From contig NW_026782136.1 of the NCBI RefSeq assembly GCF_031769215.1, positions 310,001 through 374,000 on the forward strand: DNA of 64,000 nt, in the 5' to 3' direction. The notes beneath the pieces were generated by a model. That model was given only the letters and a program-made list of their open reading frames with translations, was not told where the DNA came from and made no database searches. The DNA comes from Ylistrum balloti (lineage: Eukaryota). A program made the translations under genes and the position numbers. Of the stretch, positions 35,983-61,900 are shown in pieces. Every line of letters starts with the position of its first letter. Position 1 is the stretch's first letter.

Positions 35983-36018
<36 letters not shown>

Positions 36019-39000: not shown

Positions 39001-42000
39001 ATGACATGTGCCTGGGGAAGTTTAATGTCCACACATATGTGAAATGGAGGAATTAAGGGTATCACAAAGTGAATGGGTGGAGACACATACTGTAACATTG
39101 TCTATTGGGAGACAGACACACAATATAACATTGTCTAATGGAGACACACTTTAACATTGTCTAATGGAGAGACACACTGTAACATTGTCTAATGGAGACA
39201 CACACTGTAACATTGTCTATTGGGAGACAGACACACAATATAACATTTTCTAATGGAGAGAGACACATACTGTAACATTGTCTAATGGAGAGACACACTT
39301 TAACATTGTCTAATGGAGAGACACACTGTAACATTGTCTAATGGAGACACACACTGTAACATTGTCTATTGGGAGACAGACACACAATATAACATTGTCT
39401 AATGGAGAGAGACACATACTGTAACATTGTCTAATGGAGACACACTGTAACATTGTCTAATGGAGACACACACTGTAACATTGTCTAATGAAGAGAGACA
39501 CACACTGTAACATTGTCTAATGGAGAGAGACACACACTGTAACATTGTCTAATGGAAAGAGACGCACACTGTAACACTGTCTAATGGAGAAAGACACAGA
39601 CTGTAACATTTGTCTAATGGAGAGAGACACACATTTTAACACTGTCTAATGGAGAGAGACATGCACTGTAACATTTGTCTAATGGAGAGAGACACACACT
39701 GTAACATTGTCTAATGGAAAGAGACGCACACTGTAACACTGTCTAATGGAGAAAGACACAGACTGTAACATTTGTCTAATGGAGAGAGACACACATTTTA
39801 ACACTGTCTAATGGAGAGAGACATGCACTGTAACATTTGTCTAATGGAGACAGACACACTGTAACATTGTCTAATGGAGAGAGACACTGTAACACAAATC
39901 TGCTGGCCGCTGTCCTTTCACATCAGTACTAGACATCCAATGTAATTATGATACTATAATTGCATTCAGGATCACTGTATTGTGACATCAAAATTAACGC
40001 TCTTACCAGACATTCCATGTCTTGGCTGTTCTCATTACTTTACTTACTCCATCGTATGAAATGAAGTTTTATGTTCAGAATAACACAAATCCTGATTTAT
40101 AATATACTGTTGATAATGTAATTGTGAGTAATGATAACTTCACTAATTATAATTGACAATCAACAGGTGACATTTTGGTAAATCCCATGAGACTTTTTAG
40201 TGATGGTGTGTGTAGTGGACAAGTGATGGTGTGAGTAGTGGACAAGTGATGGTGTGAGTAGTGGACCAAAGACGGTGTGTGTAGTGTACAAATGATGGTG
40301 TGTGTAGTGTACAAGTGATGGTTTGTGTAGTGTACAAGTGATGGTGTGTGTAGTGGACAATTGATGGTGTGTGTAGTGGACAAGTGATGGTGTGTGTAGT
40401 GTACAAGTGATGGTGTGTGTAGTGTACAAGTGATGGTGTGTGTAGTGTACAAGTGATGGTGTGTGTAGTGGACAAGTGATGGTGTGTGTAGTGTACAAGT
40501 GATGGTGTGTGTAGTGTACAAGTGATGGTGTGTGTAGTGGACAAGTGATGGTGTGTGTAGTAGACAGAGATGGTGTGTGTAGTGGACAAGTGATGGTGTG
40601 CGTAGTGGACAAGTGATGGAGTGTGTAGTGGACAAGTGATGGTGTGTGTAGTGGACCAGTGATGGTGTGTGTAGTGTACAAATGATGACGTGTGTAGTGT
40701 ACAAGTGATGGTGTGTGTAGTGGACAAGTGATGGTGTGTGTAGTGTACAAGTGATGGTGTGTGTAGTGGACAATTGATGGTGTGTGTAGTAGACAGAGAT
40801 GGTGTGTGTAGTGGACAAGTGATGGTGTGTGTAGTGGACAAGTGATGGTGTGTGTAGTGGACAAGTGATGGTGTGTGTAGTGGACAAGTGATGGTGTGTG
40901 TAGTGGACCAGTGATAGTGTGTGTAGTGGACAAGTGATGGTGTGTGTAGTGGACAAGTGATGGTGTGTGTAGTGGTGTGTGTAGTGGACAAGTGATGGTG
41001 TGTGTAGTGAACAAGTGATGGTGTGTGTAGTGGACAAGTGATGGTGTTTCATTAGTGGCTGATATCCAGATACCCTACCTTCTCTCTCCTTTGACTAGTT
41101 TCTCCTTTGGCTCTGGTTAGTTCTGTGGAGTCAGAAGTGATACGTGCAGTAAGAACGGTTCTAGTGTGTACTTCATCCTTCACCTGTCGCCGGAGTGTTT
41201 CTACAGTCACCTGTCAATCACATCACATAGTGTTATAATGAAAAAAACATTTTGAGATAAAAAACAGAAATTTCTTTAAAATTTTATATCCAGAATTATT
41301 GTTATCAATATACATACACATGTAGGCAGAGACAATACTACTAATATATATGGATCTAGTGACCTAGGACACTGATTGTGACCTGTTGATCATGACCTTC
41401 AATATTTCTACCACTGATTTCATAAAACCTTGAGACATACTGGCCTGCTTTATATACTGACTTAGAAGTATTGACCTCCTGACCCTTGATGACCTACTGA
41501 CCCCTAATGACCTCCTGACCCCTGGTGACCTCCTGACCCCTGATGAACTCCTGACCCCTGATGACCTCCATGTCACTTACTAACCTTAAGGCTCTCCTCC
41601 GACTTGAATGCCTTTTCCTGTTCATTCTGAAGCTGGTCCCGGATACTGGTGTTGATATGCTGAACTTTGTGGTACTCCTCCATAGTAACAGTCATCTGTT
41701 GCTGAAGTTTCATTCTCTCCTTGTGGATACGAGCCACGTTCTTCTCATCGGCCACCTTCTGTCGCTCACTGTTAAACAAATGTTAGATAATCTTCATGTA
41801 GCATCAAAGCTGTACTGTTTCTTACCTTAAAACATCTGGAATCTTAATATGAAATCTTATTTCTACAAACATCACACAGACAATAACAGTAATTTATAAT
41901 CTGCAAGAAAAATACTACAAATGTTTGAAATAACAACACAAGATACCCAAAGGATTTCCTGGCCAATCAGTATTTTATTTATCATTAGGGTCTTGTTTTA

Positions 42001-45000
42001 AAATCTCTACCTTAATATTTTAAAATTAGGCCCTACCCTCCAGTGGCACCATCCTTTGTTTATACCATGTTATCCCCTACATGCACAACCCCAGCCTCTG
42101 CCTCCAGTCAAAGACCTATTCTTCATCTATATATAATTGACAGTATCCTTAATCGTCGTATGACTTACAACAAAATAACTTAGAATTCCTTAAGAAGATG
42201 AAGAAAATGGCTGATGCTGTTCCAGCTGAGCTAACCATCAAGTATCATAACATCAGACCCTAACAGTCTTTCTTACCAATCTTTAATCTTGTCTTGGTAG
42301 TCGTGTACTTCCATTTCAGCTTCTTGGTTCTTTAGAAGGATAGTCCGCAATTTGGAGTCATGTTGCTTCACTTTGGTCTCAAGTTCTGCTATTTTGTGGT
42401 CATTGGAACTTTTCTGAATTCACAGTATACTTAAAATCACAACAGGGCATTACTTTCAATATCACCAATACTCTGACAATCAATTATGTTAATAATAAAA
42501 AGATAACAGTATTTTTTTCTAAATGACCCTCGTTAACAAGAAGTGGATCTATACAGTTTTTTGACAATCAATTACATTTGATATAAATAAAAATAAAACA
42601 GAATTTTTTCTAAAAGACCATTATAACTAGGCAATATACTTATAAATTACCTTTGAATTCATCTCCTGTAAAAGCGATGCATTCTCATTTTCCAGTCGCT
42701 CACGCTCAAACTCTGCTTCGGCTATCTTGGACTGCAACTCAGTGACCTGTAAACGATGATAACTGAATCATGTATACAAAGTACAGTAACTCTAACATGT
42801 ACACACACTAGCATCGCTATAGAAACGACAGAGACAGTTGATGCTCCAGGAGGGTTAAATTAATTTGTATCACCTCCGCAACTATCTCACCACACAAATC
42901 ATTTCTATGAAGAATTTAGCACATTTTATCTTCTCCACAATATAAACTTACACAACTTAGATCTATTGACATTTATGAAGCCTGAATTCCCTCCCCAATA
43001 TGTAGTATTTCCACTTTTGAAGGCCTCCATTTCATCAATGATACAAACACTAGTGTCTTTTACTCACTTTTCTAGACTGCATCTCCTCAGCGACCTTGGC
43101 ATTCTCATATCTGACCTCTAACACAGTCAGTTCCTGTTCATTGTCCCTGAGTTGTTGGTTGGTGTCGTTGATTTGATGGGTATAAGCATTATGGGTCATT
43201 TTAGCCTCTGAGAGCTCCTCACTGTCAAAAACATAAGCACACATAAAGAAATATTGCTCTTCTACTGTCAAATCCTTAACCTTTACATGACCCCACTTAA
43301 TTGATTTGAAAACTGTTTTTAGTGAAAGCAGAGGTTAAAAGTCTGTGTAGGAAACAGATTCATATCCTGTAACCTCATGGTCAGATGATACTATTCATAA
43401 TTTGGTTGTAATGAAGCTGTTTTGTCTTAATGAAAATATCAGTCAATTGGACAAGCCCTGGTCCTGAGAAATTGGACGTAAATGTTGCTCTATACCATGT
43501 ACAACTGGACAAGCCCAGGTGAAGCTGGTGAAGCCATCTATTCCAAAGTGTTCAGGTGTGACCTTTGAGCCTTTCACCTTGATTGATTACCGCTAAAGAC
43601 TTAATAAGGTGTAGAATTTGATGTTGTAATATTATGATATGATTATGAACTTAATCAGTTCAGGGGTCACGAGATATCATAAGCTTGAGCTTTAGACTCA
43701 AGGACAGATGAACATACAGGCAAACAACTTACTACACTTGCATATTTTCATATATCTCCCATTACCTAGTAGAGGGGTGTAATAGGTTCTTCTAAACAGT
43801 TATTTTTAATATTTAATTAAGAGTAAAGAACTGGACAGATATTTACTCACCTTATAGTGGTCAATTCATCTTTGACCGTGTCCAGTTCTCGTTTGATATG
43901 TGATCGCTCAGTGTCAGCTTTCTGCATTGCCTCGCTGGACTTGGATGCTGTTTTCTCCTGTCGCTGTGTAGTGGTGTCAAGTTCAGTGACAGTCTAATAC
44001 AAAATACAAAAATGGATAAAGAGTCTTCTCAGAAACAGTTGATAAATTTTCTGATGTGTATATAGAATATCAATTCCAAGGAGCCAGACAGTCAGGAGTA
44101 TGTTGTAAGTGTAGACTTCGGTAACAAAATGTTCTGAAGTTTATAAAGAATATCAACTCCAGACAGCCAGACTTTGTGAAGTATATAATAAGTGTAGGCT
44201 ACAATAAGATATTCTGAAGTGTGTAGAGAATATCAATGTCAGACAGTCAGACATTGTGAAGTATATATTAAGTGTAGGCTACAATAAGATATTCTGAAGT
44301 GTGTAGAGAATATCAATGTCAGCCAGACATTGTGAAGTATATGTTAAGTGTAGGCTACAATAAGATATTCTGAAGTGTGTAGAGAATATCAATGTCAGCC
44401 AGACATTGTGAAGTATATATTAAGTGTAGGCTACAATAAGATATTCTGAAGTGTGTAGAGAATATCAATGTCAGACAGACAGACATTGTGAAGTATATAT
44501 TAAGTGTAGGCTACAATAAGATATTCTGAAGTGTGTAGAGAATATCAATGTCAGAAAGACAGACATTGTGAAGTATATATTAAGTGTAGGCTACAATAAG
44601 ATGTTCTGAAGTGAAGAATTTAACTTGAAGACTTACCTCAGTTTGTGCATTTTTTATTCTGGCCATAGCCTCCAATTCCAATTCTAATTTTTCTTCAACC
44701 AAAGGTCTAAAAAGAAAAAAAAAATGTTTACAACGAGAATAAATTGATTGTACATTATCATATATACATTATACAAACCATATTTATTCTGCCATATGCA
44801 GATTTTGCTGTTTTGGAGTTAAAATTGTCAAAGAACAGGAAATATGATTACATGATGTCACTCTTTTCCATGAAATTTTCAAGTTCAGTATTTGCTATGC
44901 AATCTTATGGCAAAAACAGAAAAAATAAGACAAGAAAATGCTGATACTAGTATACATTATACACATTGAAAATAACACGTTACAGGTTGCAATGTTTTAA

Positions 45001-48000
45001 AACTCTACAGAAAGTTTTGTTTAGTATTCATTTCATTGGTCATTTATGCATTAATCAGTCTTATTTTTCCTTTTTATTTAAGGAGCAAAACATCATACTA
45101 ATACAATAGAATGATAAGGCAGAATGGTACAAAAACTAAACAAAATTAGCGTGTCTTATTTGGATCATGAATCAGAAATTTAGAAGAATGGGTTCCTTTT
45201 AAAACAATGATTTTACAACAAAAAAATTGTAGTGACAAAGAAACACAAAATTTAACTTCATGCCAAATATCTGCAAACAGTTTTCTAATCCTAAACAGCT
45301 TCAACAAAATCTCTAAGGACCAATATCAAAGCTTGGCATTTTATTTGATCTTTAAACTCTAAATTAATTGACTAAACAAAATGGACTTTAAAAAATGTGA
45401 ACTGAAATCAAACATCAGATTCAAGAAAGTCCTGAATCATCAGCTTTTCCAACAGGAAAACAAATTTACATGTGTTTCTTGACGAAGGCTATGTCCTCAA
45501 TAAGTCTGGAGTTTAGAACCTCTGCTATGTTACATCGATCCTGCATGCGCTTGTCATTCCTAGTGGCGTAGGCAACATGCCATTGTAACTCATTCAGGTC
45601 CATGATACATGCCTCGTGTTCTGTTAAACAATGCAGGTATTAGACTTTAACATAGTGTTCTTACTTTGAACATATGTCACAATTCTATGGACATATGTCA
45701 CAATTCTATGGACATATGTCACAATTCTATGGACATATGTCACAATTCTATGGACATATGTCACTCTTCTATGGACATATGTCACTCTACTATGGACATA
45801 TGTCACTCTTCTATGGACATATGTCGCACTACTATGAACATATGTCACTCTACTATGGACATATCACACTACTATGGACATATGTCACTCTACTATGGAC
45901 ATATGTCACTCTACTATGGACATATGTCACTCTTCTATGGACATATGTCGCACTACTATGGACATATGTCACTCTACTACAGACATATCACACTACTATG
46001 GACATATGTCACTCTACTATGGACATATGTCACTCTTCTATGGACATATGTCACACTACTATGGACATATGTCACTCTACTATGGACATATGTCACTCTT
46101 CTATGGACATATGTCGCACTACTATGGACATATGTCACTCTACTATGGACATATCACTCTACTATGGACATATCACTCTACTATGGACATATGTCACACT
46201 ACTATGGACATATGTCACACTACTATGGACATATGTCACTCTACTATGGACATATGTCACACTACCATGGACATTTGTCACTCTACTATGGACATTTTTA
46301 CAAATCATAAGTTCATATGCCAATACATATATTGAAAGTAGGCTTGTCTCATTTTTTAGTGTATTAAAACAGAAATAGTGTGGAATGAGTTTTTTTTTCT
46401 GAAGAGTCAACACTGCCGTGTTTAATTTTCATTGAAATGTACAATTATTGTAGACCTGATAGGTGTAATTAGCTTTAAAGTATCAAATCAAAGGCCTATT
46501 CTGATAATATGTCATTACAATCCAGTAAATCATAAATTTGTCACCTTTCTGGACAACAGCTGGCATTTCCACCAAGCGTTTGAGACAGAGACGATCTATT
46601 TTCCCATTTAGTCGGATGACTTTTTCTTTTTCTTGCTCCAGTCTGTTGATCACTTCTTGACGATCATTTTCTAGTCGGGCCAGCAAGGTGATGACTTCAT
46701 CCACAACTTCCTCAGCACCAAGAAACGGTACATCCAGGCCTTCGTAGTCATCATCTGTAATCGTTCGCTTTGTGTTATACTTGGAAAATATTATGGACGA
46801 GTTCCTGACAGGGATAGTCATCAGAATAAGTGGACTGTGTGATTAAGTCTTTGTAAACTTCTTTTTAAAAGACACAGTTAATTGCATTTTATGTACCCAG
46901 GTGCATATATTTCCCAACTAGGTACATATCTACAAGATACAGTTTTTAAAATTCATTTTTGTTTTCATCAACATTTGTACACAGTGGCTATCTGTTTTGG
47001 CAGCCCTTGTAAAAGTGTAACCCAATGACATACACATTTTTCCCTACCTTTGTTAACCCCTGTACCCCTGATGGCAAGAGACCCTGCAGATGATGGCACT
47101 GATGTCATAGAGCTGCGAGTTTTCGCACTGGAAAGAAATTTTGAACCATCCTCACTGGACCTTGCAAATCTCAGCTGTTTTCTGCTTCCGGCTGAAAATT
47201 AGAAACATTTATGTGAGAAACATGGTGTATAATAAAGTTGCACTAAAAAAAATCAATCTTAAACTTAGGACATTCTAAGTAAAAGTAAGGTTGTTTTCCG
47301 GGAACTTATTCTACTCTGTCCAATACTTTTTTTAAGAACTATGTTTGTTATAACAGAGAGTTAATCAGTGAAGAAATAAATGATCTTATGCAATGACTGT
47401 AGATCTTGCCAATGATAAAGGTAAGCAGCCACACCAACTTGAAGACATCTTTATATTCAGATCTATTGATACAGAATTCTCCAGCAAGCATTTTAGTTTT
47501 GTCATCAGACAATAAAGTTGTCTGCTCAAACATCTTAATTTTGTAAACAGAATTTACAAATGACAAATTTGTTCCCAGAAAACTTTTGAATTTTGTCTAC
47601 AAGTGTCAAATTTGTCAACAGCAAACATTTTTACCTTCATGCATAGATGCACGACTCCTATTCTCTTCCTCACGTTCTCTAAACCATTCCTCTATAATGT
47701 TCTGAATAAGTTCCAGATGAGACACTGCCTTCTTCACACATGGGGAGGTTGTTTGTACAAGTTCACAACTCTTTCTACGCAGCAGCTTTCGTATTTTGGG
47801 CCAATTTTCTGGCAGTGGAAACACTTTGTCTGTAAGATTACACATCAGTTTGAATTAGGAACATGTTATGGTGATACACATATGAAAAAGCAGGAGAGAT
47901 TTTATCTTTTTTTTTTTTAATTCAACGAAAACAAATAAGTCAATAAATCCATAATAATTTTACACTATCTCTGTAACTAAAGATAAAACATAACTCATTT

Positions 48001-48663
48001 CATATACATATTAAAATAATATCAGGTTATTATATTTATGTTGCAAATTTTATTGATACCGGTAGTTCCTGGCTACCCTTGGCAGCGGAAATGTGATGTC
48101 CATTTATAAGTATCATATTGAAATGTCTTTTCGTCTACTCTGTTTTTCATTATACAGTCTACTTAGAAAAGAAAAAGACAGAAATACCTTCAGCTTCAAT
48201 TAACTCTAGATCATTTGCATCTTGATCTGAGCCGCTTGTACTGGCCACTGAAAGATAACAAATTAGAAACAGATGTAAACACTGTCTACTGGCCATGGAC
48301 AATTCTACCAGCTACCTAAATCTATGGTATAAAATCATAGTTTATAACACACACTGTATTTCCACTGAAATGTTTGTGACCTTTCTTCAAGGATAGTTCA
48401 TAAATGAATTAAAATTGATTTTACTGACCAGAATCATTGAACCCATAGAAAAACAGTTCTATCATATGAATTTACTGACCAGAATCATTGAACCCATAGA
48501 AAAACAGTTCTATCATTTGAATTATACAAAACATGTGTAGGAATACGTTACCTTGTAATGACTGGGAGCTGGCAACAAGAGCACTTTTGCTCTGTGTAAA
48601 CTGTGAACTGAAGGTTTCCCTGGGCTCCACATCTTCCAGCCTCACCACTTTTGTCATAGACAT
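26693..48663 (-). CDS. CCDC178: Gene model: coiled-coil domain-containing protein 178 orthologue, 22 coding exons, about 969 aa
   Basis: All junctions phase-consistent from ATG 48663 to TAA 26693, with one acceptor uncertain (46754). Motifs RRKSCELVQTTSPCVKKAVSHL, RLENDRQ...MPAVVQKEHEA...ELQWH and the C-terminal FKY...FMQTEMDG match vertebrate CCDC178 as recalled. Confidence 0.85.
27052..27168. repeat. 31-bp repeat, 3-4 copies, each carrying CAG|GTAGGT on the minus strand
   Basis: gacaagtgacctacctgttggtgaggtatca repeats abut the donor of exon 27164-27313. Confidence 0.9.
27164..27313 (-). CDS. CCDC178: CCDC178 exon
   Basis: ttttttataaag|GGT GAT...AAA CAG|gtaggt; 150 nt. Confidence 0.9.
27440..27590 (+). 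mobile_element. Degenerate SINE-like fragment
   Basis: gtaaagtgttttgccctaggacataac...ctaacca resembles a conserved SINE body motif (gtaaagtgtcttgcccaaggacacaac); recalled, not searched. Confidence 0.35.
27688..28282 (+). mobile_element. Putative non-autonomous Helentron-associated (HINE-like) element
   Basis: Starts aacaagag like the element at 31388 and ends in a short hairpin followed by an A run (ctccctctc...agaggtgatcttaaa). Confidence 0.3.
28351..28424 (-). CDS. CCDC178: CCDC178 exon
   Basis: cttcattttag|CT CGG ATT...TCT CAG|gtctgt; 74 nt; supplies the required phase 1 to 0 bridge. Confidence 0.8.
28530..30227. repeat. 22-bp minisatellite, about 75 copies
   Basis: Unit cacactatatacaYctccctac. 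Confidence 0.95.
30312..30397 (-). CDS. CCDC178: CCDC178 exon
   Basis: ttctgttgtag|T GAG CGC...TTA G|gtaaaa; 86 nt. Confidence 0.85.
30780..31260. repeat. 50-bp minisatellite, about 10 copies, made of exon end plus GTAAGT donor
   Basis: Unit acttacgtgaagtctgtgatggccttttgtgtactgtacaccaacataaa; copies at 30901 and 30951. Confidence 0.95.
31233..31378 (-). CDS. CCDC178: CCDC178 exon
   Basis: ttttacttatag|AAT GAA GTG...TTC AC|gtaagt; 146 nt. Confidence 0.9.
31388..32456 (+). mobile_element. Non-autonomous Helentron-associated (HINE/Pearl-like) element with an internal 89-bp tandem array of about 9 copies
   Basis: 5' aaacaagag; internal gggcaataattc and caagtttc; (ggac/agat) microsatellite cores; 3' hairpin tatgctctc...ggggagcata followed by aaa. 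Confidence 0.6.
32595..32708 (-). CDS. CCDC178: CCDC178 exon
   Basis: gatgtttcag|AAA AAG GAC...CTC AAG|gtaaga; 114 nt. Confidence 0.9.
34411..34464 (-). CDS. CCDC178: CCDC178 short exon (tentative)
   Basis: tgttttctgccag|CCT GTT AAG...ACA GAG|gtagag; 54 nt, symmetric; PVKEDLTGMYTLRRENTE. Confidence 0.55.
35545..35637 (-). CDS. CCDC178: CCDC178 exon
   Basis: ttcttttgacag|GCT AAA AAG...AAT GAG|gtaatc; 93 nt. Confidence 0.85.
35990..36017. repeat. (AT)n microsatellite preceded by (AC)n
   Basis: Direct reading of the sequence. Confidence 0.9.
37820..38778. repeat. 30-bp minisatellite, about 32 copies, with a 150-bp higher-order repeat
   Basis: Unit acagtgtaacactggtcagtcctaatgccW; tct variant at 38001, 38151, 38301, 38451 and 38601. 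Confidence 0.95.
38943..39011 (-). CDS. CCDC178: CCDC178 acidic exon (possible cassette)
   Basis: acttccccag|GCA CAT GTC...TAT CAG|gtaagt; 69 nt; AHVIVDEEDDSDDEDLSNSAQYQ. Confidence 0.7.
39080..39893. repeat. About 30-bp variable minisatellite, about 27 copies
   Basis: Unit gagacacacactgtaacattgtctaatgga with variable GA/CA lengths. Confidence 0.9.
40198..41047. repeat. 23-bp minisatellite, about 37 copies
   Basis: Unit gtggacaagtgatggtgtgtgta. Confidence 0.95.
41079..41210 (-). CDS. CCDC178: CCDC178 exon
   Basis: gtgattgacag|GTG ACT GTA...GAG AAG|gtaggg; 132 nt. Confidence 0.9.
41471..41570. repeat. 18-bp repeat, about 5 copies
   Basis: Unit gacctcctgacccctgat, just after the donor of exon 41585. 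Confidence 0.85.
41585..41768 (-). CDS. CCDC178: CCDC178 exon
   Basis: tttgtttaacag|T GAG CGA...CTT AAG|gttagt; 184 nt. Confidence 0.9.
42277..42413 (-). CDS. CCDC178: CCDC178 exon
   Basis: gtgaattcag|AAA AGT TCC...GAT TG|gtaaga; 137 nt. Confidence 0.9.
42651..42746 (-). CDS. CCDC178: CCDC178 exon
   Basis: atcgtttacag|GTC ACT GAG...TCA AAG|gtaatt; 96 nt. Confidence 0.9.
43068..43221 (-). CDS. CCDC178: CCDC178 exon
   Basis: gtttttgacag|T GAG GAG...AGA AAA|gtgagt; 154 nt. Confidence 0.9.
43851..43993 (-). CDS. CCDC178: CCDC178 exon
   Basis: ttttgtattag|ACT GTC ACT...ATA AG|gtgagt; 143 nt. Confidence 0.9.
44040..44612. repeat. About 80-bp minisatellite, about 6-7 copies
   Basis: Unit tgtaggctacaataagatattctgaagtgtgtagagaatatcaatgtcag(acag)Ncagacattgtgaagtatatattaag. 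Confidence 0.9.
44637..44706 (-). CDS. CCDC178: CCDC178 exon
   Basis: tttctttttag|A CCT TTG...ACT GAG|gtaagt; 70 nt. Confidence 0.9.
45470..45620 (-). CDS. CCDC178: CCDC178 exon (EHEA...ELQWH motif)
   Basis: ttgtttaacag|AA CAC GAG...CAC AT|gtaaat; 151 nt. Confidence 0.9.
45668..46305. repeat. 21-bp minisatellite, about 30 copies, with palindromic core GACATATGTC
   Basis: Unit atggacatatgtcactctact. Confidence 0.95.
46545..46754 (-). CDS. CCDC178: CCDC178 exon (acceptor uncertain)
   Basis: Donor AAA G|gtgaca is clear. The only phase-1-compatible acceptor I found is gattacag at 46755, although the frame stays open to 46834. DDYEGLDVPFLGAEEVVDEVITLLARLENDRQ... Confidence 0.75.
47048..47191 (-). 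CDS. CCDC178: CCDC178 exon
   Basis: ctaattttcag|CC GGA AGC...AAA G|gtaggg; 144 nt. Confidence 0.8.
47635..47829 (-). CDS. CCDC178: CCDC178 exon (RRKSCELV...PCVKK motif)
   Basis: aatcttacag|AC AAA GTG...GAA G|gtaaaa; 195 nt. Confidence 0.9.
48188..48247 (-). CDS. CCDC178: CCDC178 exon
   Basis: ttatctttcag|TG GCC AGT...GAA G|gtattt; 60 nt. Confidence 0.75.
48420..48530. repeat. Two-copy duplication of about 52 bp
   Basis: ttactgaccagaatcattgaacccatagaaaaacagttctatcat x2, just downstream of the donor at 48551. Confidence 0.85.
48552..48663 (-). CDS. CCDC178: CCDC178 first coding exon (exon extends to acceptor at 48704)
   Basis: ATG TCT ATG ACA...CAA G|gtaacg; MSMTKVVRLEDVEPRETFSSQFTQSKSALVASSQSLQ. 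Confidence 0.75.
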
Positions 48664-49700
48664 CTTGATAGTATGTCAGTTATTTTCTTCCATTTTAAAG
48701 TGACCTGAATATTTGACAAAACATTATATGAATATGTATTTATTAAAGCTAAAATAAGATATCATGTATAATCATCAATGTGAACATTAAGTGCCAGTCA
48801 ACTAAGTAGCTAAACAATTCCTCCAAACATTTCTGAAATATGTTTAGGAATTAAAATGCCTGTATGTGTGTGTAAACAGAACATCATTTATGGGCTAATG
48901 ATGAATATTATAGTTACTGATCTATAATTCCAGCAATTGCTTAAATTCAAACTGAGACTACATGAATTAAAAATCCATTCTCATTATGAGAGTGTTATAT
49001 ATTAAAATCATCAAAATAGTGATTTCCTCCGATTTCCAATTGAAGGCTTAGAAAACTTTATTTCAACATAATGTATAAATATCTTTAGTATAGCTGTGAA
49101 CCAGTTCAAAATGATAAAGCAGTAATGATATATGTAAAAATGTTCATCTTTTTGGATCCAAATGCATTTGCTTTTAGCCAGTTCCTATTTATTTACTTAG
49201 TCTTACTTATTCGCTACTGATCTCAAGCCTTTAGGCCTCTATATTCAGATCCAAATCCTTCATCTTAAGTGTAAGTTTATATTGGTCGTTTCTGTTCGGT
49301 ATGTATGATTTATTTAAACTGATATTATGAACCATATCTCTCCAGTGTTTATCCAGCCTGCTCTCAAAGGTGTTGAGTGTTGGTATTTATGTTATTTTTA
49401 TTTTTTTAAATTACATAATTCAGATATTTATAATGATTTGATTGAAATACCTCCTTGTTAAACCAAACAATTCTTTGTGTCGTAAAAGCAGTAAATCTGA
49501 GATCAATATTTATGGATTTTGATTCAAGGGACCTAACTTTGTTAGTAGCAAAGGTAGGTAGGCCTTTTAGACACGATATACATTAAGCTACAATCATTTC
49601 CGTTTCTCAATGTAATTATTTCGTTGGTTACGATCTATGAACAAGGGTTTTATCACTCAATGGTGTGTCTTGTACAAGGTTAATGTAGAATCAACATTAC

Positions 49701-49750
49701 CTATTGTTTCACGGTTTGTTTATCACTGTCCTCCATTTTGACGCCATTGC
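49701..49750 (-). other. CCDC178: Probable non-coding first exon of CCDC178 (5' end approximate)
   Basis: Donor caatag|gtaatg at 49700, immediately after a YY1-like caaaatgg. Confidence 0.5.
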
Positions 49751-49830
49751 AGTTTCCATGCAGGATTTTGTGTCGAGCTCGTTGATTGGATGTTCATATT
49801 ATCACGTGATTCTAACAAAAATGGCGCAGG
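49730..49830. promoter_or_regulatory. Compact bidirectional promoter between CCDC178 and ASXL
   Basis: Oppositely oriented YY1-like motifs (ccattttgacgccatt 49733-49748; aaaatggcg 49818-49826), palindromic E-box atcacgtgat 49801-49810, reverse CCAAT 49785-49789, RFX-like half site gtttccatg 49752-49760. Confidence 0.6.
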
Positions 49831-49910
49831 ATAGTTGGAGTCAGCTCTTTGTAAAGATATGACGACTGAATATTTACACTATTTTATTCAATTTTGCATT
49901 TGGATGCACA

Positions 49911-49985
49911 ATGCAAATCGATAACTCGAAAGATAAACAACCGAAAAGAAGGAAAAACCGAACATGGGCCGAGGCTGCGAAGATA
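49911..49985 (+). CDS. ASXL: ASXL exon 1
   Basis: [25 protein letters not shown]|gtaagt. Confidence 0.95.
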
Positions 49986-52900
49986 GTAAGTCTCAAGATA
50001 CATCCTAAAGTCGACCGTCAACAACAGTTGTCCGATTTTGATATTGCATGGGCAGCTGTCTTAAGGCATTTTCGGTCTGAAAATTTAACGGATCTAGCTT
50101 ATTTTCCCTTACAGAACAACAAAGCCATTGTATTACTGATGGTGATCATGTATGAACAAATCTATCTGAGAAAAGAATACAGTTTTCCATACTGTTGGCT
50201 TACATTTATTTACAAATATCCACGACCACAGCCGATCAGTATTTGCTTCTGGTGAAATCCTTATATGCTTATCGATATCTTGATATATATGTCATCTCTC
50301 CCAAGTTATAGTCAAGCCCTTCTTCATTTAAGATTTATATGTTGATCACGTAAGAAATAGCAATTGTTTTCATCGTTTAGCATAAAAAAACTGCAGCTTT
50401 CTTTCTTCATTTTGTTTGACGATTTATTCCAAGCTGCATGTGGATTCTTGTCATTTGATTATGAACGCCATATCACTGATTTTGATTTGCTTTGGACATA
50501 TTCCCAGCTGTTAGAGAATAAAGAACAGATTCTTTTAAGATTCCCATGTGTAACTGACAGAAATGAAAGTTAGCTTGCTGTCAAAATATGTCAGAATAAA
50601 TATTTACTTAGTAGATAAATAAATTACTGAAAAAGAAAAGAAATAGCTCAGTCCATATCAGGTGACATATCATATGTATTAAGGTTGATATATATATATT
50701 ATAACTATCTGACCGACTGATTTTAGATAATTGCTGCATAGTTAAGGAAGTGACTTATTTCTTTCCAATTTTCTGCTTCACTGATTACACATTTTCCCTG
50801 ATCATGATTTTAAGGTTCATCCCTTTTAAGAAATAAATATGTCTAACAACAATTAGGAAGAAAATGCAAATAGTTGTACATGGAAGCTTCTCCAAAAGAA
50901 AAATTGAAAGTCAGTGTCTATTTAATGTATTTAAAATATCAAACACATTGGATGCAAGCTGTAAAATTGATGATGGATGATTTCTATGCTAAAATAAGTA
51001 TATTGGTTTTCTCTTGCCAAGTGTTGAGCTGAGATTTTTATCAGATCTCACTTAAAGGTATTTAAGGTCAGGAAATACCTCCATAAGTAAGTTTGCTTCC
51101 TATATCACTGCTATTTGGCATATATGTATTCATTCAATTTCTGTTTTACATCTTGGAATAATTTGTGGTCCCCCATCCCACCCCAGTTGAAGACAAAAGC
51201 CTTCTTGCATCAGAAGAGCTGACTGAATTATTGAAAAGTCTATACTTCTATAAGTTACAACTCATCACATCTCTGTACCATTGTCTAATTTAATGCTGAA
51301 GGTCTATATTTTTTTTATTTTAACACATTTCAGATTTTCCAGTCTTTCCATCAAAACTCACATCATATTTTTATTTTTATGTAAATTCAGTTTCTGTAAA
51401 TTGTAAGTTTAAAATTAATTGGTCAATGAAAAATTAGCCAATCAAACATTGACTTGGTATATGCTAAAACATAACCAGTTGAAACAATAGGGATAACAGA
51501 CCATTCTTTGCAAGCAACCAGCTTTTGGTGACTGTGAGAACACCAAATTTTAGAAATTTACAGAAAATGAGACCTGCTTTATTGATAAAACAGATGTACA
51601 ACCTTGTCATTTTACTGATCAATAACTCAATGTAGACGGTAAACTGTAAGAGATAGTTTTCCATTTGATTTTGTCTTTTACATTTGTTTGAATGTTACAA
51701 AAGAAATCTGAAAAAAATTGAATGATTTAGATTGAAGTTTTACATAGATACTAACAGAACATTATGATAAAAGTCACTACTATGTTGAACATTTGAATAA
51801 TTGTCATTTATTCCAAATTTCATTGTATTTTATTTTAGGTATTGGAGAGAAATGCACAGATTCCTATGAGCTACAAAGCTATTCTACAAGCAATCCAAGA
51901 TGATAACTTAAAGGATATCAGGTAATTATAAATCATATTGTTAAATAGAATCGTTAATGGTTGCTATATTCAGTACCAATTCTATAAATCTTATTTGGAC
52001 ATGACATCTGATAGTGATTCATGCTGTCAATTTCTGCATTTATTACTGTTTTGATTCATACACAGCAAATTTTTAGCAGTTTCAAAACCAAGAGTATTAA
52101 GTTGTTGTTTCTTTTGATTATTTTCTTTTCGTTTTTGAGATTTAACGTCCTTGTTACGGTTATAACCGAGTCTAGGACACATATATATATATAAGTTGTT
52201 GTTCATTTTGTTTTTGTTTTTTATCTTAATATTTTAGTACTTATATTTTGTTAGCAATAGACCATTTAGAATGTAGGAAGTGAGTAGATGAGATATCCGA
52301 GATTAACAATTTTTAAGATTGTAGCACATTATGATATATGAACATTGCTTGCCTTTTTCCAGTGGGTCTGTGCCCTTGGCATGCCTAAATTCCTGTCTCC
52401 ATGCGTACTCCAGAGGAAAAGATTCTGTCTTCTACAAGGTGGCCGGAAGATCAGGGGTGTATGGACTAATGGTATGTACAGTTAACAAATGAAGGTTTCT
52501 GTCTGATATAAGGAGGTTGGTAAATGTATAGACTATATATGTATAGTGATGCATATACTAATGGTACATACAATTATAATGTAACAAATGTTTTATTGTA
52601 GTGAGAGGGAAAGTTTTCATCTTCTACAAGGTAGCCAGTAGATCAGGGATGTATAGCAAAACTAATGATACTTAAAGTTATAATGTTACAGAAGTCTTAT
52701 TTTAATAAGAGGGAAAGTTTCGTCTTATAGAAGGTGACTGATAGAACAAGGGTTTATAGACTTATGGTACATACAGTTATAAGGTAACAAATGTCTTATT
52801 GTAACGTGAAGGAAGGTTTTTGTCTTCTACAAAGTGACTGGTTGATCAGAGGTGTACGGACTAATGGCACTCACAGTTATGAAATGTCCTTATATAACCA

Positions 52901-55900
52901 TTTGGTTTTGAGTGTAATATTGTTATTCTAGTTTAATGTTTGATTGCTGGTTTTTGATACCTGCTATACATATTAAAACATTGCCTGAATTACGCCTTGA
53001 TATATAAATCTAAGTTATGGCTGTTGAAGAGCACAACAACGATTAAACATGTATATGTGGATGATAGTAAAGATTTCTTTTATATGAGTGTGATAGAAAA
53101 CTGAGGTTCTGTCATTTCAATAAAATGTGCATGACATTTAAGAGAAAACTATTGAATAAAATCCATTTTTTATGCAACAAAGATGTAATATTCTAACTTT
53201 ACCTGTGTCTCAATAGAAAAGTTTACAGACTTCAACGGAGAAATAGAAAGCATGGTTCTGATTGGTCAATACTGAAAGAAAGCATTGATCTGATTGGTCA
53301 ATACTGAAAAGATATCATTAATTTATCTTATTCTTGTTGTATGTAGGGTGATCGACCCAGTGGTTCTACACTTCATGAAGTACCAGAAGAGAATGAAGAC
53401 GATGATGGCAGGGACCGACCCTTCAAGGAACGCAGGAAGGAAAATGGTATTATTTCATGTTTCAAAACTTGAATTATGACCTGTACTTCCCAAATGATTA
53501 TTGTAGGTTTCTGGATTAATGGGATTGAATGGAATGCTTTGCCCCTTTCAAGTCCATGCATTCATATTTCATTCTTGAAAAACCAGATAAAATTCAAGGT
53601 CCACTCCTGCTAAGATTGTGGTAATCTTTGGTCAGTAGTGTAGAAGATCATCCTTGACCACTTTTGAAATTAATGCTTGTACAACATAACTTGTTCAAAC
53701 CCTTTACATATTGACACCAGTCCATCACAACCTCAAGTTCTACACCTTATTAGATTGTGGTAATCTTTGGTCAAGGTGTAAAAGATCACCCTTGACTTCT
53801 TTTGAAATTAAAGCTTGTGTACACGATAACTTGTTTAAACTCTTTACATATTAACAGCATTTTATCACAACCTCAAGTTCTACACCTGATTAGGTCTTTG
53901 TTAACATCTGTCAAGGTTAAAGGTCACACTTGGTTATTGTTGAAATAAAAACATCATGAGGTGGGAATATATTTAGAGAGGCTCTCCTCTTTTTGTTTTA
54001 GAATATAAAAGTATTGCTGTATTTACATTTACTGTCATTATATTCCAAACTATATTATCATTCATGTTATTTTTTAGTGACAGGTGAGGAAATCAAATAC
54101 GTTGTGTATAATATGAGTGAAAATCTAAAAACTTAGCTCTTTGATGGAACAAGTTACAAATACTAAAGGTTTTAGAAAGAGAAGTTTAGTGTCATAAATT
54201 GTTATTTGCAGTGATGTTTGTAAGTTTACCTTCCTGGGTAAAAACAATTCCTCCATCAGAAGACGATGATGAACAATCTAATGGTGATGCAGATGATGTA
54301 GTAGAGCCAGCAGACACTAAGGAAAGCCACCACACATCCTCATCTGTGTCGTCAGGGACAAGCATATCCTCGCATGTCAACCACACCCTGAGACGAAGTA
54401 TGCGACAGTCTTTACGCCAAAAACAGAAGAAGAAACAAAACGACTATCCCAGAATCATTATAAAACCTATTCCACCTCCTGACAAGGAGAAAGAAGTAAA
54501 GACTGTCAAAGGTGAATTGTCCATCATGTTACTAGAATAGATGTAAGGCGCGAAACTATCAAATACCTGCTTGTTAAGTTATAACATTATTGCTGACTTA
54601 GTACAATCTCCATTTAGTTACCCCCCTGATTTGAGATCATATGGGAAATATTTTAATTGCCCACATCCATTCCTCCTACTTCTATCCCCACATAAAACTG
54701 TGTTCTGTTGGGTTGGTTCTGCTCAAATTTATCCATGAAATTTGCTACTTCAGAGGAAGTACTTGCTTTCGGACAACCTCATATCAGGAGGTCAAGGTCA
54801 CTGTTAAGATAAATAGAAAATTCTGTTTTTGCATAATATCATGAGTAATCTATTCAATCTTTGTTTTTAAATACTATGTTATATATATAATATATATATG
54901 ATGCATTTATAATCTAACTTGTTCAGATGGAAATACAGAAATGGAATCAGAAAACGATGGCAGTCTGCAAAATGGTGATAGCAAATCTGACAGCTCTGAC
55001 AGTGGTAAATCACCAGCACCGTCTTCAAAGCGTCCTCAGACTATGAGAGAAATACTGGCTGGGATTCCTGGATTTAGTATGAAGGTACAGTCCAGTGTTA
55101 ATGTTCTACAAAGAAATTTCAACTGCTTATTGTAATAACCATCCACTCACCACAATCATTTTATATTAGACTACATGTATCTTTGATTAGGTACCAAGAC
55201 CATTACTGTAGTCACTTTATATATGTACCTGTCCATTTTATTTTTCTAAATTCCTCAAATTTTGGGTCAAATATACAGATTATTAGTGACAGAAAGGTAG
55301 ACCCCCAACTAATGGGTAAGAGTGTTGGGTCATTGGCAAATTTTTTAAAACAATTTTCTGGTATAGGCGGATCACTTCAGAACAAATTTTAATGCATGAG
55401 GTATTTGAGACAGATAAGCGTGACTTAATAGGAGATGTTGGATATTCTGAAAGATATAAAGTCCAGAATTGCTTGCTATAGTTTTACTAAAGTTGCTGAA
55501 GGACTTTTTGGTGAAGATACATGCATTTTTCCAAAATTATTTGATGACTGGTAATCATTACTGATTCTATAACTTTGATGTTTTTTTTTGTTATTTTTAG
55601 CCCCGAAGGAGGCCTCATAAAAAGTTAAGCCATGCTGCACAAATTGCCCAAACAAAAGAAGGCTGTATTGATTTGGAAACTCCAGACTCCATTCTTTGTA
55701 ATACAAACCTAAGAGTAAGTGTTGGAGATTTTAAATCCAGAAAGTGCGTGTTTGTAATGCATTGTTTCTATACAAAAGGTAAAATTAATTAAATGGAATA
55801 TTGTATGATTATAAACAGTAAAATTATGTACTGTCGTTTCTGTAGTAAATGAGAATTCTCCAGTGATTGTCAAAGTAAATTTTGTGCTCACCGTTGATAA

Positions 55901-58900
55901 CAACCCTTTTCAGATTTTCAACAATGACTGTTACATTTCAGAATTTGATAGACAAGAGAATGTTCTCCAAACTGCCAAGCCAGTACCAATACAAACTATT
56001 ACATTTTTTACCTGAATGTGACAGATATGTGGGACAGGACAACACTCTTCGGTATGTTAACACATGTTTAGTGGTCAATACCCTTTGGTATTATAATGCA
56101 TGTTTCACAGGACAGCATCCTCCAGTATGTTTAGACACATGTTTTACAGAACAATGCCCTCCAGTATGTTTAGATACATGTTTTACAGAACAATGCCCTC
56201 CAGTATGTTTAGACACATGTTTTACAGAATAATGCCCCCCAGTATGTTTAGATACATGTTTTATAGAACAATGACCTCCTGTATGTTTAGATACATGTTT
56301 TACAGAACAATGCCCTCCAGTATGTTTAGATACATGTTTTACAGAACAATGCCCTCCAGTATGTTTAGATACATGTTTTACAGAACAATGCCCTCCAGTA
56401 TGTTATGATACATGTTTTACAGAAAAATTCCCTCCAATATGTTTCGATACATGTTTTACACAAAAATACCCTCCAGTATGTTTAGATACATGTTTTACAG
56501 AACAAGTCTCTCCAGTATGTTTTGATACATGTTTTACAGAACAATGCCCTCCAGTATGTTTAGATACATGTTTTACAGAACAATGCCCTCCAGTGTGTTT
56601 AGATACATGTTTTACAGAACAATGCCCTCCAGTATGTTTAGATACATGTTTTACAGAACAATGCCCTCCTGTATGTTTAGATACATGTTTTACAGAACAA
56701 TGCCCTCCAGTATGTTTAGATACATGTTTTACAGAACAATGCCCTCCAGTGTGTGATACATGTTTAGATACATGTTTTACAGAACCCCCCCAGTATGTTT
56801 AGATACATGTTTTACAGAACAATGCCCTCCAGTGTGTTTAGATACATGTTTTACAGAACAATGCCCTCCAGTATGTTTAGATACATGTTTTACAGAAAAA
56901 TGCCCTCCAGTATGTTTAGATACATGTTTTACAGAACAATGCCCTCCAGTATGTTTAGATACATGTTTTACAGAACAAGGCTCTCCAGTATGTTTTGATA
57001 CATGTTTTACAGAACAATGCCCTCCAGTATGTTTAGATACATGTTTTACAGAACAATGCCCTCCAGTGTGTTTAGATACATGTTTTACAGAACAATGCCC
57101 TCCAGTATGTTTAGATACATGTTTTACAGAACAATGCCCTCCAGTATGTTTAGATACATGTTTTACAGAACAATGCCCTCCAGTATGTTTAGATACATGT
57201 TTTACAGAACAATGTCCTCCAGTGTGTTTAGATACATGTTTTACAGAACAATGCCCTCCAGTATGTTTAGATACATGTTTTACAGAACAATGCCCTACAG
57301 TATGTTTAGATACATGTTTTACAGAACAATGCCCTCCAGTATGTATAGATACATGTTTTACAGAACAATGCTCTCCAGTATGTTTATATACATGTTTTAC
57401 AGAACAATGCCCTCCAGTATGTTTAGATACATGTTTTACAGAACAATGCCCTCCTGTATGTTTAGATACATGTTTTACAGAACAATGCCCTCCAGTATGT
57501 TTAGATACATGTTTTACAGAACAATGCCCTCCAGTATGTTTAGATACATGTTTTACAGAACAATGCCCTCCAGTATGTTTAGATACATGTTTTACAGAAC
57601 AATGCCCTCCAGTATGTTTAGATACATGTTTTACAGAACAATGCCCTCCAGTATGTTTAGATACATGTTTTACAGAACAATGCCCTCCAGTATGTTTAGA
57701 TACATGTTTTACAGAACAATGCCCTCCAGTATGTTTAGATACATGTTTTACAGAACAATGCCCTCCAGTATGTTTAGATACATGTTTTACAGAACAATGC
57801 CCTCCAGTATGTTTAGATACATGTTTTACAGAACAATGCCCCCCAGTATGTTTAGATACATGTTTTACAGAACAAGGCTCTCCAGTATGTTATGATACAT
57901 GTTTTACAGAACAATGCCCTCCAGTATGTTATGATACATGTTTTACAGAAAAATTCCCTCCAATATGTTTAGATACATGTTTTACAGAACAAGTCTCTCC
58001 AGTATGTTTTGATACATGTTTTACAGAACAAGGCTCTCCAGTATGTTTTGATACATGTTTTACAGAACAATGCCCTCCTGTATGTTTAGATACATGTTTT
58101 ACAGAACAATGCCCTCCAGTGTGTTTAGATACATGTTTTACAGAACAATGCCCTCCAGTGTGTTTAGATACATGTTTTACAGAACAATGCCCTACAGTAT
58201 GTTTAGATACATGTTTTACAGAACAATGCCCTCCTGTATGTTTAGATACATGTTTTACAGAACAATGCCCTCCAGTGTGTTTAGATACATGTTTTACAGA
58301 ACAATGCCCTCCAGTATGTTTAGATACATGTTTTACAGAACAATGCCCTCCAGTATGTTTATATACATGTTTTACAGAACAATGCCCTCCAGTATGTTTA
58401 GATACATGTTTTACAGAACAATGCCCTCCAGTATGTTTATATATGGTTTTATTGGACAACGCCCTCCATTATTTTTACACAAAATGTTTTACTTGACAAC
58501 ATTTGCCTATATACGTAGGAGGGCTTTGAATTTGTAGATTTGTGAAAAGTATCTTACTAAAGCTCATCGATGTACTGCCAATTATCTGATGAGAATTGGA
58601 ATATTTTTGGATACTACATGTTTTATATGTACTTTGTCAACATTAAAAGAAAGAATAAAAGCAGTATTATACAAGAAGTCTCACCTAATCATCTTAATGT
58701 TGTCTTTACTAGAAACTTTCTCATTAATTATTATGTTCCAGGTTAAGTAGCACAGCATTGAACAATGAATTTTTCAATAAATCCTGCCAGGAATGGATTG
58801 AAAGGCTCTCGCAGGGTAAGTATAATTCAATTTGTCATTGTAAACTTTATATGTACCTCAAACTAACAACTTTGTGAGGATTTATTTCTGTCCTCTATAA

Positions 58901-61900
58901 ACTATTCATGAAAACAATGTGAAATCTGAGAAAAGCCTATGGTTATTGGTGTTATTCCAACATGTGATAATATTAACAGAACTAGCGATTGATCTGTAGA
59001 CTGTGAACATATGGTAGGAAAAACATTGTATGCAATCATGACAGGAATAAAAATGTATGCAAACATGGTAGGAAAAACATTGTATTCAAAATATCTACTT
59101 TCTAGACACTATTCAGTGGAAAAAATTGTAAGTGCGAAAATACAAATCTTCAGTATGTTAAATGATTCCTGAAACAAAACAGATCCAAATTACACATGTG
59201 TTGACATTATAGGAGAGTTCACACCAGAAAACCAGATGCGTATAAAGCAGGAAGAAGAGAGGGAGCTAAGTAAACTGGATCCTTGGAAGGTAGAGTTATA
59301 GTGATTCCTACAGTATTGTTCTGTAAAGAAATTTTATAACAAAGGTTTATAGGAGAATTTTAGGACCAAAGAGAATAAAATGTGATAGGATTTTGTCAGT
59401 ATCTGAAATTATCATTATTATGAAATGCTCCTTGTCCACCTGCTTCACTTCTTGTCGAAAAAAAAAATTTCTGTTTCTATTTCTCTGAAAATGTACTACA
59501 GCAACCGAAGAAGGTTTTCTAATTTGATCATAGAATGTACACAAGTTTTAACCATGACAGAAATTTGAAAAAAATATCTCAATTTTACAGTTAATAAAAA
59601 ATTCAAATTTTAGCATTAATCATTCCATCTCATAAGCATTTAACTCTTTTCTGTTTTACAGGCAAAACATTTTGAGGAAATGTGGGGGAAAAGGTAAGAC
59701 ATTTTGCTATATGGCTGGAGGGGTTACGTCCTCTGTTAAGATATTTACATTGTTCTATAAGGATCAGGAGGTACATTCATCGTTAAGATATTTACATTGT
59801 TCTATAAGGCTTCAGGGGGTACATTCACCATTTAGATAGTACATTCTCTGTTATGATATTTATACGTGCTGTATGTCTTAAGAGAGTACATTCTCTGTTC
59901 AGATATTTACATGGAGCTGTGTGTCTGTAGAGGGTACATTCTCTGTTAAGATATTTATACTGTGCCTTATCTCTTTAGGGGGTACATTCTCTGTTAAGAT
60001 ATTTATACTGTGTGGTATCTCTTTAGGGGGTACATTCTCTGTTAAGATATTTATACTGTGCCTTATCTCTTTAGGGGGTACATTCTCTGTTAAGATATTT
60101 ATACTGTGTGGTATCTCTTTAGGGGGTACATTCTCTGTTAAGATATTTATACTGTGTGGTATCTCTTTAGGGGGTACATTCTCTGTTAAGATATTTACAT
60201 TGTGCTGTATGTCTTAAGAGAGTACATTCTCTGTTCAGATATTTACATGGAGCTGTGTGTCTGTAGAGGGTACATTCTCTGTTAAGATATTTATACTGTG
60301 TGGTATCTCTCTAGAGAGTACATTCTCTGTTAAGATATTTATACTGTGCTGTATACCTCTAGAGGGTACATTCTGTGTTAAGATACTTGTGTGATGCTGT
60401 ATACCTCTAGAGGGTACATTCTGTGTTAAGATACTTGTGTGATGCTGTATACCTCTAGAGAGTACATTCTGTGTTAATTCTTGTGTTATGCTGTATATCT
60501 CTCTAGAGGGTACATTCTCTGTTAAGATATTTATACTGTGCCTTATCTCTTTAGGGGGTACATTCTCTGTTAAGGTATTTGTGTGTGCTGTATACTCTCT
60601 AGAGAGTACATTCTGTGTTAAGATATTTGTGTGATGCTGTATCTCTCTAGAGTGTACATTCTCTGTTAAGATATTTATTGTGTGATGCTGTATACATTCT
60701 CTAAGAGTGTACATTCTCTGTTAAGATATTTATACTGTGCCGTATCTATTTATGTGGTTGATTGTATGTTATTATATTTATACTGTGCCTTATCTCTTCA
60801 GGGGGTACATTCTCTGTTAAGGTATTTACATTGATGCTGTATACCTCTAGAGTGTACATTCTCTGTTAAGATACTTACGTGATGCTGTATACCTCTAGAG
60901 TGTACATTCTCTGTTAAGATACTTACGTGATGCTGTATACCTCTAGAGTGTACATTCTCTGTTCAGATACTTATGTGATGCTGTATACCTCTAGAGTGTA
61001 CATTCTCTGTTAAGATACTTGTGTGATGCTGTATACCTCTAGAGTGTACATTCTCTGTTAAGATACTTACGTGATGCTGTATACCTCTAGAGAGTACATT
61101 CTCTGTTAAGATACTTACGTGATGCTGTATACCTCTAGAGTGTACATTCTCTGTTAAGATACTTATGTGATGCTGTATACCTCTAGAGAGTACATTCTGT
61201 GTTAAGATACTTGTGTGATGCTGTATACCTCTAGAGGGTACATTCTCTGTTAAGATATTTACATGATGCTGTATACCTCTAGAGAGTACATTCTCTGTTA
61301 AGATACTTACGTGATGCTGTATACCTCTAGAGTGTACATTCTCTGTTAAGATACTTACGTGATGCTGTATACCTCTAGAGAGTACATTCTCTGTTAAGAT
61401 ATTTACATGATGCTGTATGGCTTAAGAGTATGTATTTACTTTGTTGGGAATCTGTGCCTCTCTCTCTTAACAGAGAGTTGTAGTAATCATTTGAACACAG
61501 CTGCGAACAAATCAATAATGCTACCTAACGTAACATACTTGTCAGACAAGATACTTGTGCAAAATGGGTCATTGGTTGCCATTAGATAGGATATTGTATA
61601 ACATCAAATATAAGTTGGTACTCTCTTTGGTAGTTTAAACCTAAGACACCTGTCTTGGATACTACACCAATACCTGTGCACATACAGAATTCTTTTAATT
61701 GGATTTTTGTAGTTTGTGAAAATTACAAAATCATGGAAAGTTTGAATGCATCAAACATCTTTATGTTATGCCTATTTGTAGTTGATGTTTTTGAGTTGAG
61801 GTATATGAATGCCTTACTTGTTTTTCATTATATTAAAGTCATTTGTCTTGATTTCCAGAAATGTTGGGTATGAAGTTCCAAAAGCAGACCTTCCATCACC

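Follow-up and report, generated by a model that had tools for sequence, protein, structure and literature searches.

The genes for ASXL, a Polycomb cofactor, and CCDC178, a coiled-coil protein of the sperm/cilia type, lie head-to-head in a 64,000-nucleotide stretch of the genome of Ylistrum balloti (NCBI RefSeq assembly GCF_031769215.1, contig NW_026782136.1, positions 310,001 to 374,000 of the forward strand), hereafter called the window, in whose coordinates features are given unless another locus is named. The short region between the two genes probably contains a compact bidirectional promoter of about 100-200 bp common to both. The pair, its orientation and a three-part arrangement of motifs, consisting of two opposed YY1-type boxes and an E-box, recur in at least seven animal lineages from at least five phyla. 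Protostomes and deuterostomes alike have the pair with the same motif set, so that it most likely goes back to the common ancestor of all bilaterians.

The intergenic region and its conservation

The two genes are divergent, with CCDC178 on the minus and ASXL on the plus strand. Their start codons are 1247 bp apart, most of this distance being an intron in the 5' untranslated region (UTR) of CCDC178. The initial annotation had placed the donor of the first CCDC178 exon at 49700 and the ASXL start codon at 49911, about 210 bp apart, and both were located there, with 210 bp between the donor of the predicted exon 1 and the ATG. This donor (CAATAG/GTAATG on the minus strand, last exon base 49701, GT at 49700-49699) fixes the 3' end of a short, predicted non-coding exon 1 of CCDC178 (49701..49765, minus strand); the 5' end of the exon, 49765, is a guess.

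On the CCDC178 side of the region, a double YY1-type box (49731..49750, minus strand) reads CAATGGCGTCAAAATGGAG. It comprises the box AAAATGGAG (49731-49739, minus strand), which has one mismatch to the YY1 core, and a second core, CAATGGCG, at 49743-49750; the 12-mer CCATTTTGACGC within it (49733-49744, plus-strand coordinates) is present as a single copy in the window. The palindromic E-box TCACGTGA lies at 49802..49809, with CACGTG at 49803-49808, and the ASXL-side YY1-type box AAAATGGCG, with the core AANATGGCG, at 49818..49826 on the plus strand. The YY1/Pho core scored was AANATGGCG or GCCAT, and factor binding is taken from motif resemblance. The opposed boxes, each in sense orientation for the gene it faces, span 94 bp between their outer edges. 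Mirrored YY1-like motifs around a central palindromic E-box had been described in the initial annotation; both kinds of motif are present, but the E-box is off-centre, with 9 bp separating it from the ASXL-side box and 58 bp from the box facing CCDC178.

Taken singly, the motifs are not rare in the window (CACGTG 10 occurrences against 7.9 expected, AAAATGGMG 3 against 1.05). As they are individually unenriched, the window alone is not decisive and the reality of the motifs rests on their conservation across species. The core has a GC content of 0.43 against a background of 0.33, and a CpG observed/expected ratio of 0.84. An Rfam search of 48500-50100 returned nothing, which places the conserved 12-mer outside any known RNA gene. 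Only one public run covers the stretch, a DNA run of another individual, and it contains single-nucleotide polymorphisms and a polymorphism of a 51-bp repeat.

For the comparison with other animals, ASXL was recognised in annotated genomes by its Pfam domains. An ASXL gene with HARE-HTH, ASXH and PHD_3 is head-to-head with CCDC178 in the cephalochordate Branchiostoma lanceolatum (530 bp from ATG to ATG), in the brachiopod Lingula anatina (482 bp; locus L006) and in the hemichordate Ptychodera flava (1644 bp). The nemertean Tubulanus polymorphus (L008) has an ASXL gene with ASXH and PHD_3 in the same arrangement, 1238 bp away as measured to the annotated start. Further, two ENA samples, reached through exon fragments of CCDC178, provided three contigs (L001 and L002 belong to one sample, L003 to the other) that carry colinear CCDC178 exons, with 50-58% identity to many phyla, and ASXL exon 1 upstream on the opposite strand. 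By tblastn, ASXL exon 1 is divergent from CCDC178 in L001-L004, L006 and L009. The linkage, which the initial annotation had supposed to predate the bilaterian split, is found on both sides of the protostome/deuterostome divide, in Lingula and Tubulanus on the one and in Ptychodera and Branchiostoma on the other, and is divergent in all of them.

We read the intergenic DNA of every locus bearing the pair and defined a composite of E-box and ASXL-side core as CAC[GA]TG, 5-25 nt, AANATGGCG. This composite occurs exactly once between the genes, in ASXL orientation, in all eight pair-bearing sequences (window, L001-L004, L006, L008, L009), a count in which the window is included and one sample stands twice, with L001 and L002. 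Across all 466 kb, resampled sequence gives a chance expectation of 0.06 occurrences. There were three matches elsewhere, two in the coral locus and one formed by a cathepsin start codon. The shared promoter proposed at the outset is thus supported by a conserved motif arrangement.

The E-box reads (T/C/G)CACGTGA in six lineages and TCACATGA in Branchiostoma, and in every case 9-25 nt separate it from the ASXL-side box downstream. The latter, AA(A/G/T)ATGGCGG, is present in every locus with the pair; it precedes the ASXL ATG by 83-84 nt in the window, L001/L002 and L003, and by about 90-115 nt in Lingula, Ptychodera and Branchiostoma. On the CCDC178 side, five lineages (window, L001/L002, L003, Lingula L006, Tubulanus L008) have the 12-mer CCATTTTGACGC in identical form and as a single copy; in its place, Ptychodera and Branchiostoma carry the variants CGCCATATTG and GCCGCCATATTG. 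Measured between outer edges, the span of the opposed boxes is 94-125 bp in five lineages. A MAFFT alignment of the intergenic regions misplaced the window sequence, and comparison works at the level of motifs alone.

Five lineages (window, L001/L002, L003, Lingula, Ptychodera) have a donor-like site 12-85 nt downstream of the CCDC178-side box. In Tubulanus and Branchiostoma the box is followed by the CCDC178 ATG without an intron, after 68 nt and 134 nt, respectively. The box is therefore at the 5' end of CCDC178 in all lineages, which supports the predicted non-coding exon 1. An ATG within each CCDC178-side box opens 5-15 codons only, so that these ATGs are not protein starts; if transcribed, they would form small upstream reading frames. 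Between the opposed boxes, an ETS-like 14-mer, CGGAAGTAGYCGAA, is found in L003 (6019-6032) and in Lingula (L006 9659-9672) and nowhere else in the 11 loci; the window core contains no ETS-like box.

Whether the linkage is missing in other invertebrates, a point also raised by the initial annotation, has a mixed answer. It is present in the four phyla named above, but ASXL exon 1 was not found upstream of CCDC178, within 10 kb, in Antedon (crinoid), Strongylocentrotus (sea urchin), Gigantopelta (deep-sea snail) and Desmophyllum (coral, L007). Some lineages have therefore lost the pair or stretched it, and an origin before Bilateria is unsupported. In Antedon, a gene with low-density lipoprotein receptor class A (Ldl_recept_a) repeats takes the place of ASXL. 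Nothing is annotated within 10 kb upstream of CCDC178 in Strongylocentrotus and Gigantopelta, where a long 5' UTR intron could hide the promoter and ASXL. In the coral, CCDC178 is head-to-head with an unannotated first exon (L007 ~9746-9900, minus strand) encoding MGGQHSQFTEEELKDYQ, which we take to be CIB-like, and the intergenic region of about 200 bp contains GCCGCCATCTTG and a TGACGTGACGTCA palindrome. In Tubulanus (L008 8762-9700), the annotated ASXL-like gene begins about 900 bp downstream of the composite and has no HARE-HTH match; the true first exon may be absent from the annotation or diverged.

The two genes and their surroundings

By its sequence the plus-strand gene is ASXL, because it encodes part of HARE-HTH, tiles the ASXH profile and matches ASXL1 and Asx structures. 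Its coding region (49911..64000, plus strand) extends past the window end. The first coding exon (49911..49985, plus strand) has 25 codons with an RTWAEAA motif, and ends at 49985, before a GTAAGT donor. An exon in 52325-52489 on the plus strand encodes the C-terminal portion of HARE-HTH (Pfam profile positions 37-70), with an E-value of 4.4e-4; this match does not reach the whole-protein cut-off because it comes from a single exon. Four successive plus-strand exons (55601-55789, 55882-56100, 58728-58874 and 59173-59298) tile the ASXH/DEUBAD profile, covering positions 3-30, 29-77, 69-97 and 94-122, and one of them matches human ASXL1 (E = 1.8e-6) and Drosophila Asx in PDB. A large ASXL exon starts at 61809 on the same strand. 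PHD_3 had no match in the 730 ASXL residues inside the window, the gene running past 64000.

The minus-strand gene is an orthologue of CCDC178, judged by sequence searches in both directions. Its coding region (26693..48663, minus strand) comprises about 19 exon-sized open frames, from the ATG at 48663 to a stop codon at 26693-26695. The first coding exon (MSMTKVVRLEDV...; 48552..48663, minus strand) ends with base 48552, followed by the donor GTAACG. Its N-terminal KVVRLED is matched by KVVRIDE in Lingula and KIVRLED in Tubulanus. As the starting query we used one exon, E6 (46546-46782, minus strand), for which a word search gave five exon-sized fragments; their alignment with the window exon contains the strongly kept stretch PYLGAEEVVDEV..LLARLENDR. 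The profile made from this one-exon alignment was run against 1.84 billion proteins and yielded 229 proteins at E ≤ 1e-3. We looked up 20 long matches, 16 of which were named; all 16 were linked to CCDC178 and none carried the name of another family. Most were called CCDC178 or CCDC178-like, the Bulinus entry being a 'hypothetical protein' and the gar entry bearing the name of a zebrafish clone. Invertebrate sources of named matches were Lingula, Antedon, Branchiostoma, Gigantopelta, Tubulanus, Mercenaria, Saccoglossus, Ptychodera, Strongylocentrotus and Desmophyllum; the vertebrates were Ambystoma (867 amino acids), Mobula, Amia and Acipenser.

For the reverse search, 13 proteins of the CCDC178 family were compared to the window with tblastn, and their matches, which include those of named CCDC178 proteins from 12 species, were colinear with the exons from 47836 down to 26711. 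Each protein gave 2-12 colinear segments (12 and 664 bits for Gigantopelta; 4, down to E = 1.6e-11, for Ambystoma). Pfam searches with the CCDC178 exons produced sub-threshold coiled-coil noise only, in which nothing fits. The protein closest to the window CCDC178 is its counterpart in the clam Mercenaria, with 65% identity over the exons they share; gastropods and Lingula come next. The names that the initial annotation had given to the two genes, and its conditional assumption of a protostome source, are in agreement with these results.

The window is AT-rich animal DNA without N. The introns of both genes are filled with long minisatellite arrays that have periods of 22-102 bp and as many as 125 copies (1925-3158, 20241-24465, 28538-30234, 56119-58492 and others). 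In CCDC178 intron 2, a 51-bp tandem repeat (48416-48523, 2.1 copies) is variable in copy number, a contig of the other individual skipping exactly 51 bp there. In the predicted 5' UTR intron of CCDC178, the depth of the DNA run is doubled at 49218-49318, and contigs break at about 49228-49257 and at 49396. A minus-strand frame at 49234-49386 (...LNTFESRLDKHW...) resembles the tail of a retrotransposon open reading frame 2 (ORF2), and 49218-49400 is probably a repeat fragment that lengthened this intron.

At the left edge of the window, the open frame 2-283 (minus strand) matches Pfam DUF4523 (E = 8.9e-9) and belongs to a separate gene downstream of CCDC178. In Lingula (L006 19791-25244) and Tubulanus (L008 16763-20553), a cathepsin-like gene (Inhibitor_I29 and Peptidase_C1) is found tail-to-tail downstream of CCDC178, making a three-gene block ASXL-CCDC178-cathepsin in these two species; it was not found in the window between 1 and 26700.

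Mechanism and alternative explanations

In the mechanism we propose, both start sites would lie within or just outside the core of about 100 bp, each YY1-type box falling just downstream of the start site, no more than some tens of bases into its transcript. Sense-oriented YY1 boxes of vertebrate promoters are usually placed in this way. A CACGTG-binding basic helix-loop-helix leucine zipper factor (USF/Max/Myc/TFE type) and an orthologue of YY1/Pho may together open one nucleosome-free region of about 100-300 bp that fires both ways. The elements of both genes would interlock within these 100-300 bp, so that any breakpoint would harm one of the promoters; rearrangement would thus be costly, and we propose that the linkage persisted for this reason. 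Vertebrates would have retained the neighbours, as CCDC178-ASXL3, with the promoters moved far apart.

A bolder version, which is possible but in our view doubtful, takes the succession of YY1/Pho box, CACGTG and YY1/Pho box as a single promoter of which each motif has been retained since the bilaterian ancestor. ASXL, a cofactor of the Polycomb repressive deubiquitinase (PR-DUB), would stand under the direct control of Pho/YY1, the DNA-binding recruiter of Polycomb complexes, in an ancient Polycomb feedback loop with CCDC178 as a passenger; the promoter would have split in vertebrates, leaving CCDC178 as a bystander with long-range elements next to ASXL3. If true, there would be very few other promoters whose sequence can likewise be traced from one phylum to another.

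Several observations weigh against a shared ancestral promoter. The start sites, the non-coding exon 1 of CCDC178 and the co-expression of the two genes are predictions, the sole run covering the stretch being of DNA, and the binding of YY1/Pho and of an E-box factor is putative, from motif resemblance. The contigs L001-L003 may not represent independent phyla. The spacing of the boxes is inconstant, reaching about 260-285 bp in Tubulanus and Branchiostoma by arithmetic on their positions, and the four species in which the pair was not found within 10 kb indicate that the constraint can be broken. Moreover, mouse CCDC178 is reported to be mainly a testis protein needed for sperm formation (reviewed in PMC12123824), and this bias in mammals is not an obvious fit to a shared promoter of the housekeeping type.

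The two promoters might instead merely abut and the pair be held by the constraint of a genomic regulatory block, with enhancers for ASXL or another regulator in the introns of CCDC178, CCDC178 as a bystander, and the motifs as elements of an ASXL-only promoter. Human CCDC178 and ASXL3 (18q12.1) are divergent and more than 100 kb apart, and at such a distance in mammals a shared core promoter cannot hold the pair. Nevertheless, the mammalian genes are still neighbours (PMC11910941, PMC12852251), and human CCDC178 ranks among the 100 non-transcription-factor genes with the most ultraconserved elements (PMC13513235), as is typical of bystanders. This richness fits a second, long-range constraint after separation of the promoters, making the regulatory block the main rival of the shared promoter or else its complement; both mechanisms are given for ancient gene pairs by Irimia et al. 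(2012, PMC3514665). A bystander model, however, needs neither the 5'-5' orientation nor the spacing of 482-1644 bp that invertebrates have kept, and the YY1-type box in CCDC178 sense is also kept, together with a splice donor or within the 5' UTR. As a replacement for the shared promoter we therefore consider the regulatory block unlikely.

The non-coding exon of CCDC178 was predicted from sequence, with a donor (GTAATG) that matches the consensus only moderately and an acceptor before the ATG at 48663 that is weak by eye. Were this exon unreal, CCDC178 would start near its ATG at 48.66 kb, the region 49.73-49.83 kb would be a promoter of ASXL only, and the opposed box would only drive short, unstable antisense transcripts. 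Against this, five lineages have a donor-like site after this box. In Tubulanus and Branchiostoma, where the box stands 68 and 134 nt before the CCDC178 ATG with nothing between them, it must be promoter or 5' UTR of CCDC178; we thus hold an unreal exon to be very unlikely. Least credible of all is a neutral adjacency that survived by chance, with coincidental motif matches. It would accord with the lack of enrichment of any single motif in the window, but the same orientation is found in at least five phyla, the composite occupies the orthologous place in 8/8 sequences against 0.06 expected, and the 12-mer is identical in five lineages. A promoter shared by ASXL and CCDC178 is the reading that we prefer.

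Significance and relation to known systems

Ancient head-to-head pairs are a known class; what takes this pair beyond a catalogue entry is that the motif arrangement of its promoter can itself be recognised in at least five phyla. From one animal phylum to another, gene order is for the most part scrambled and non-coding sequence almost never recognisable, whereas here the gene pair and a promoter arrangement of about 100 bp are both traceable from bivalve to amphioxus. The locus offers a small, concrete object for studying how bidirectional promoters constrain rearrangement and how motifs survive for more than half a billion years. Common ancestry of the promoter would explain why human ASXL3, a neurodevelopmental disease gene, adjoins CCDC178, and would provide a natural experiment in which a promoter common to both genes in invertebrates was split in vertebrates. 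It also raises the possibility that ASXL genes are controlled via YY1/Pho sites. That ASXL, as a Polycomb cofactor, is functionally coupled to a coiled-coil protein, as the initial annotation suggested, is possible but hypothetical.

Vertebrate bidirectional promoters are enriched in YY1, E-box (Myc/USF) and ETS/GABPA motifs. The window core resembles them in having no TATA box, GC and CpG values above its surroundings, a CACGTG box, and opposed, sense-oriented YY1-type boxes near the presumed start sites. The cores of Lingula and L003 share with them, in addition, the ETS-like CGGAAGTAG, which has no counterpart in the window core. This comparison is one of sequence motifs, with binding and start sites predicted.

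The mammalian pair differs from that of the window in the distance given above, and hence in having no common core promoter; it is like it in comprising the same two families, presumably also in divergent orientation. ASXL1 and ASXL2 are not known to have such a CCDC178 neighbour, which ASXL3 alone would have kept. Vertebrates have three ASXL paralogues against one CCDC178 per species among the matches seen. CCDC178 is described as the neighbouring gene of ASXL3 in mammals (PMC11910941), and NOL4, ASXL3 and CCDC178 are found together on cattle chromosome 24 (PMC12852251).

We found no paper linking ASXL or CCDC178 with microsynteny, in a literature search that did not extend to the supplementary lists of PMC3514665; the main text of that article does not name the pair. 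Irimia et al. (2012, PMC3514665) describe conserved ancestral microsyntenic pairs (CAMPs) that are held by bidirectional promoters, such as HSPE1-HSPD1, and propose promoter interlocking as the mechanism behind many ancient pairs in 5'-5' orientation. As portrayed there, CAMPs are like ASXL-CCDC178 in that unrelated genes lie 5'-5' at very short spacing, with a linkage extending across protostomes and deuterostomes. ASXL-CCDC178 differs from them in two respects: the arrangement of promoter motifs, besides the gene order, is traceable across phyla, and vertebrates gave up the short spacing but kept the neighbourhood.

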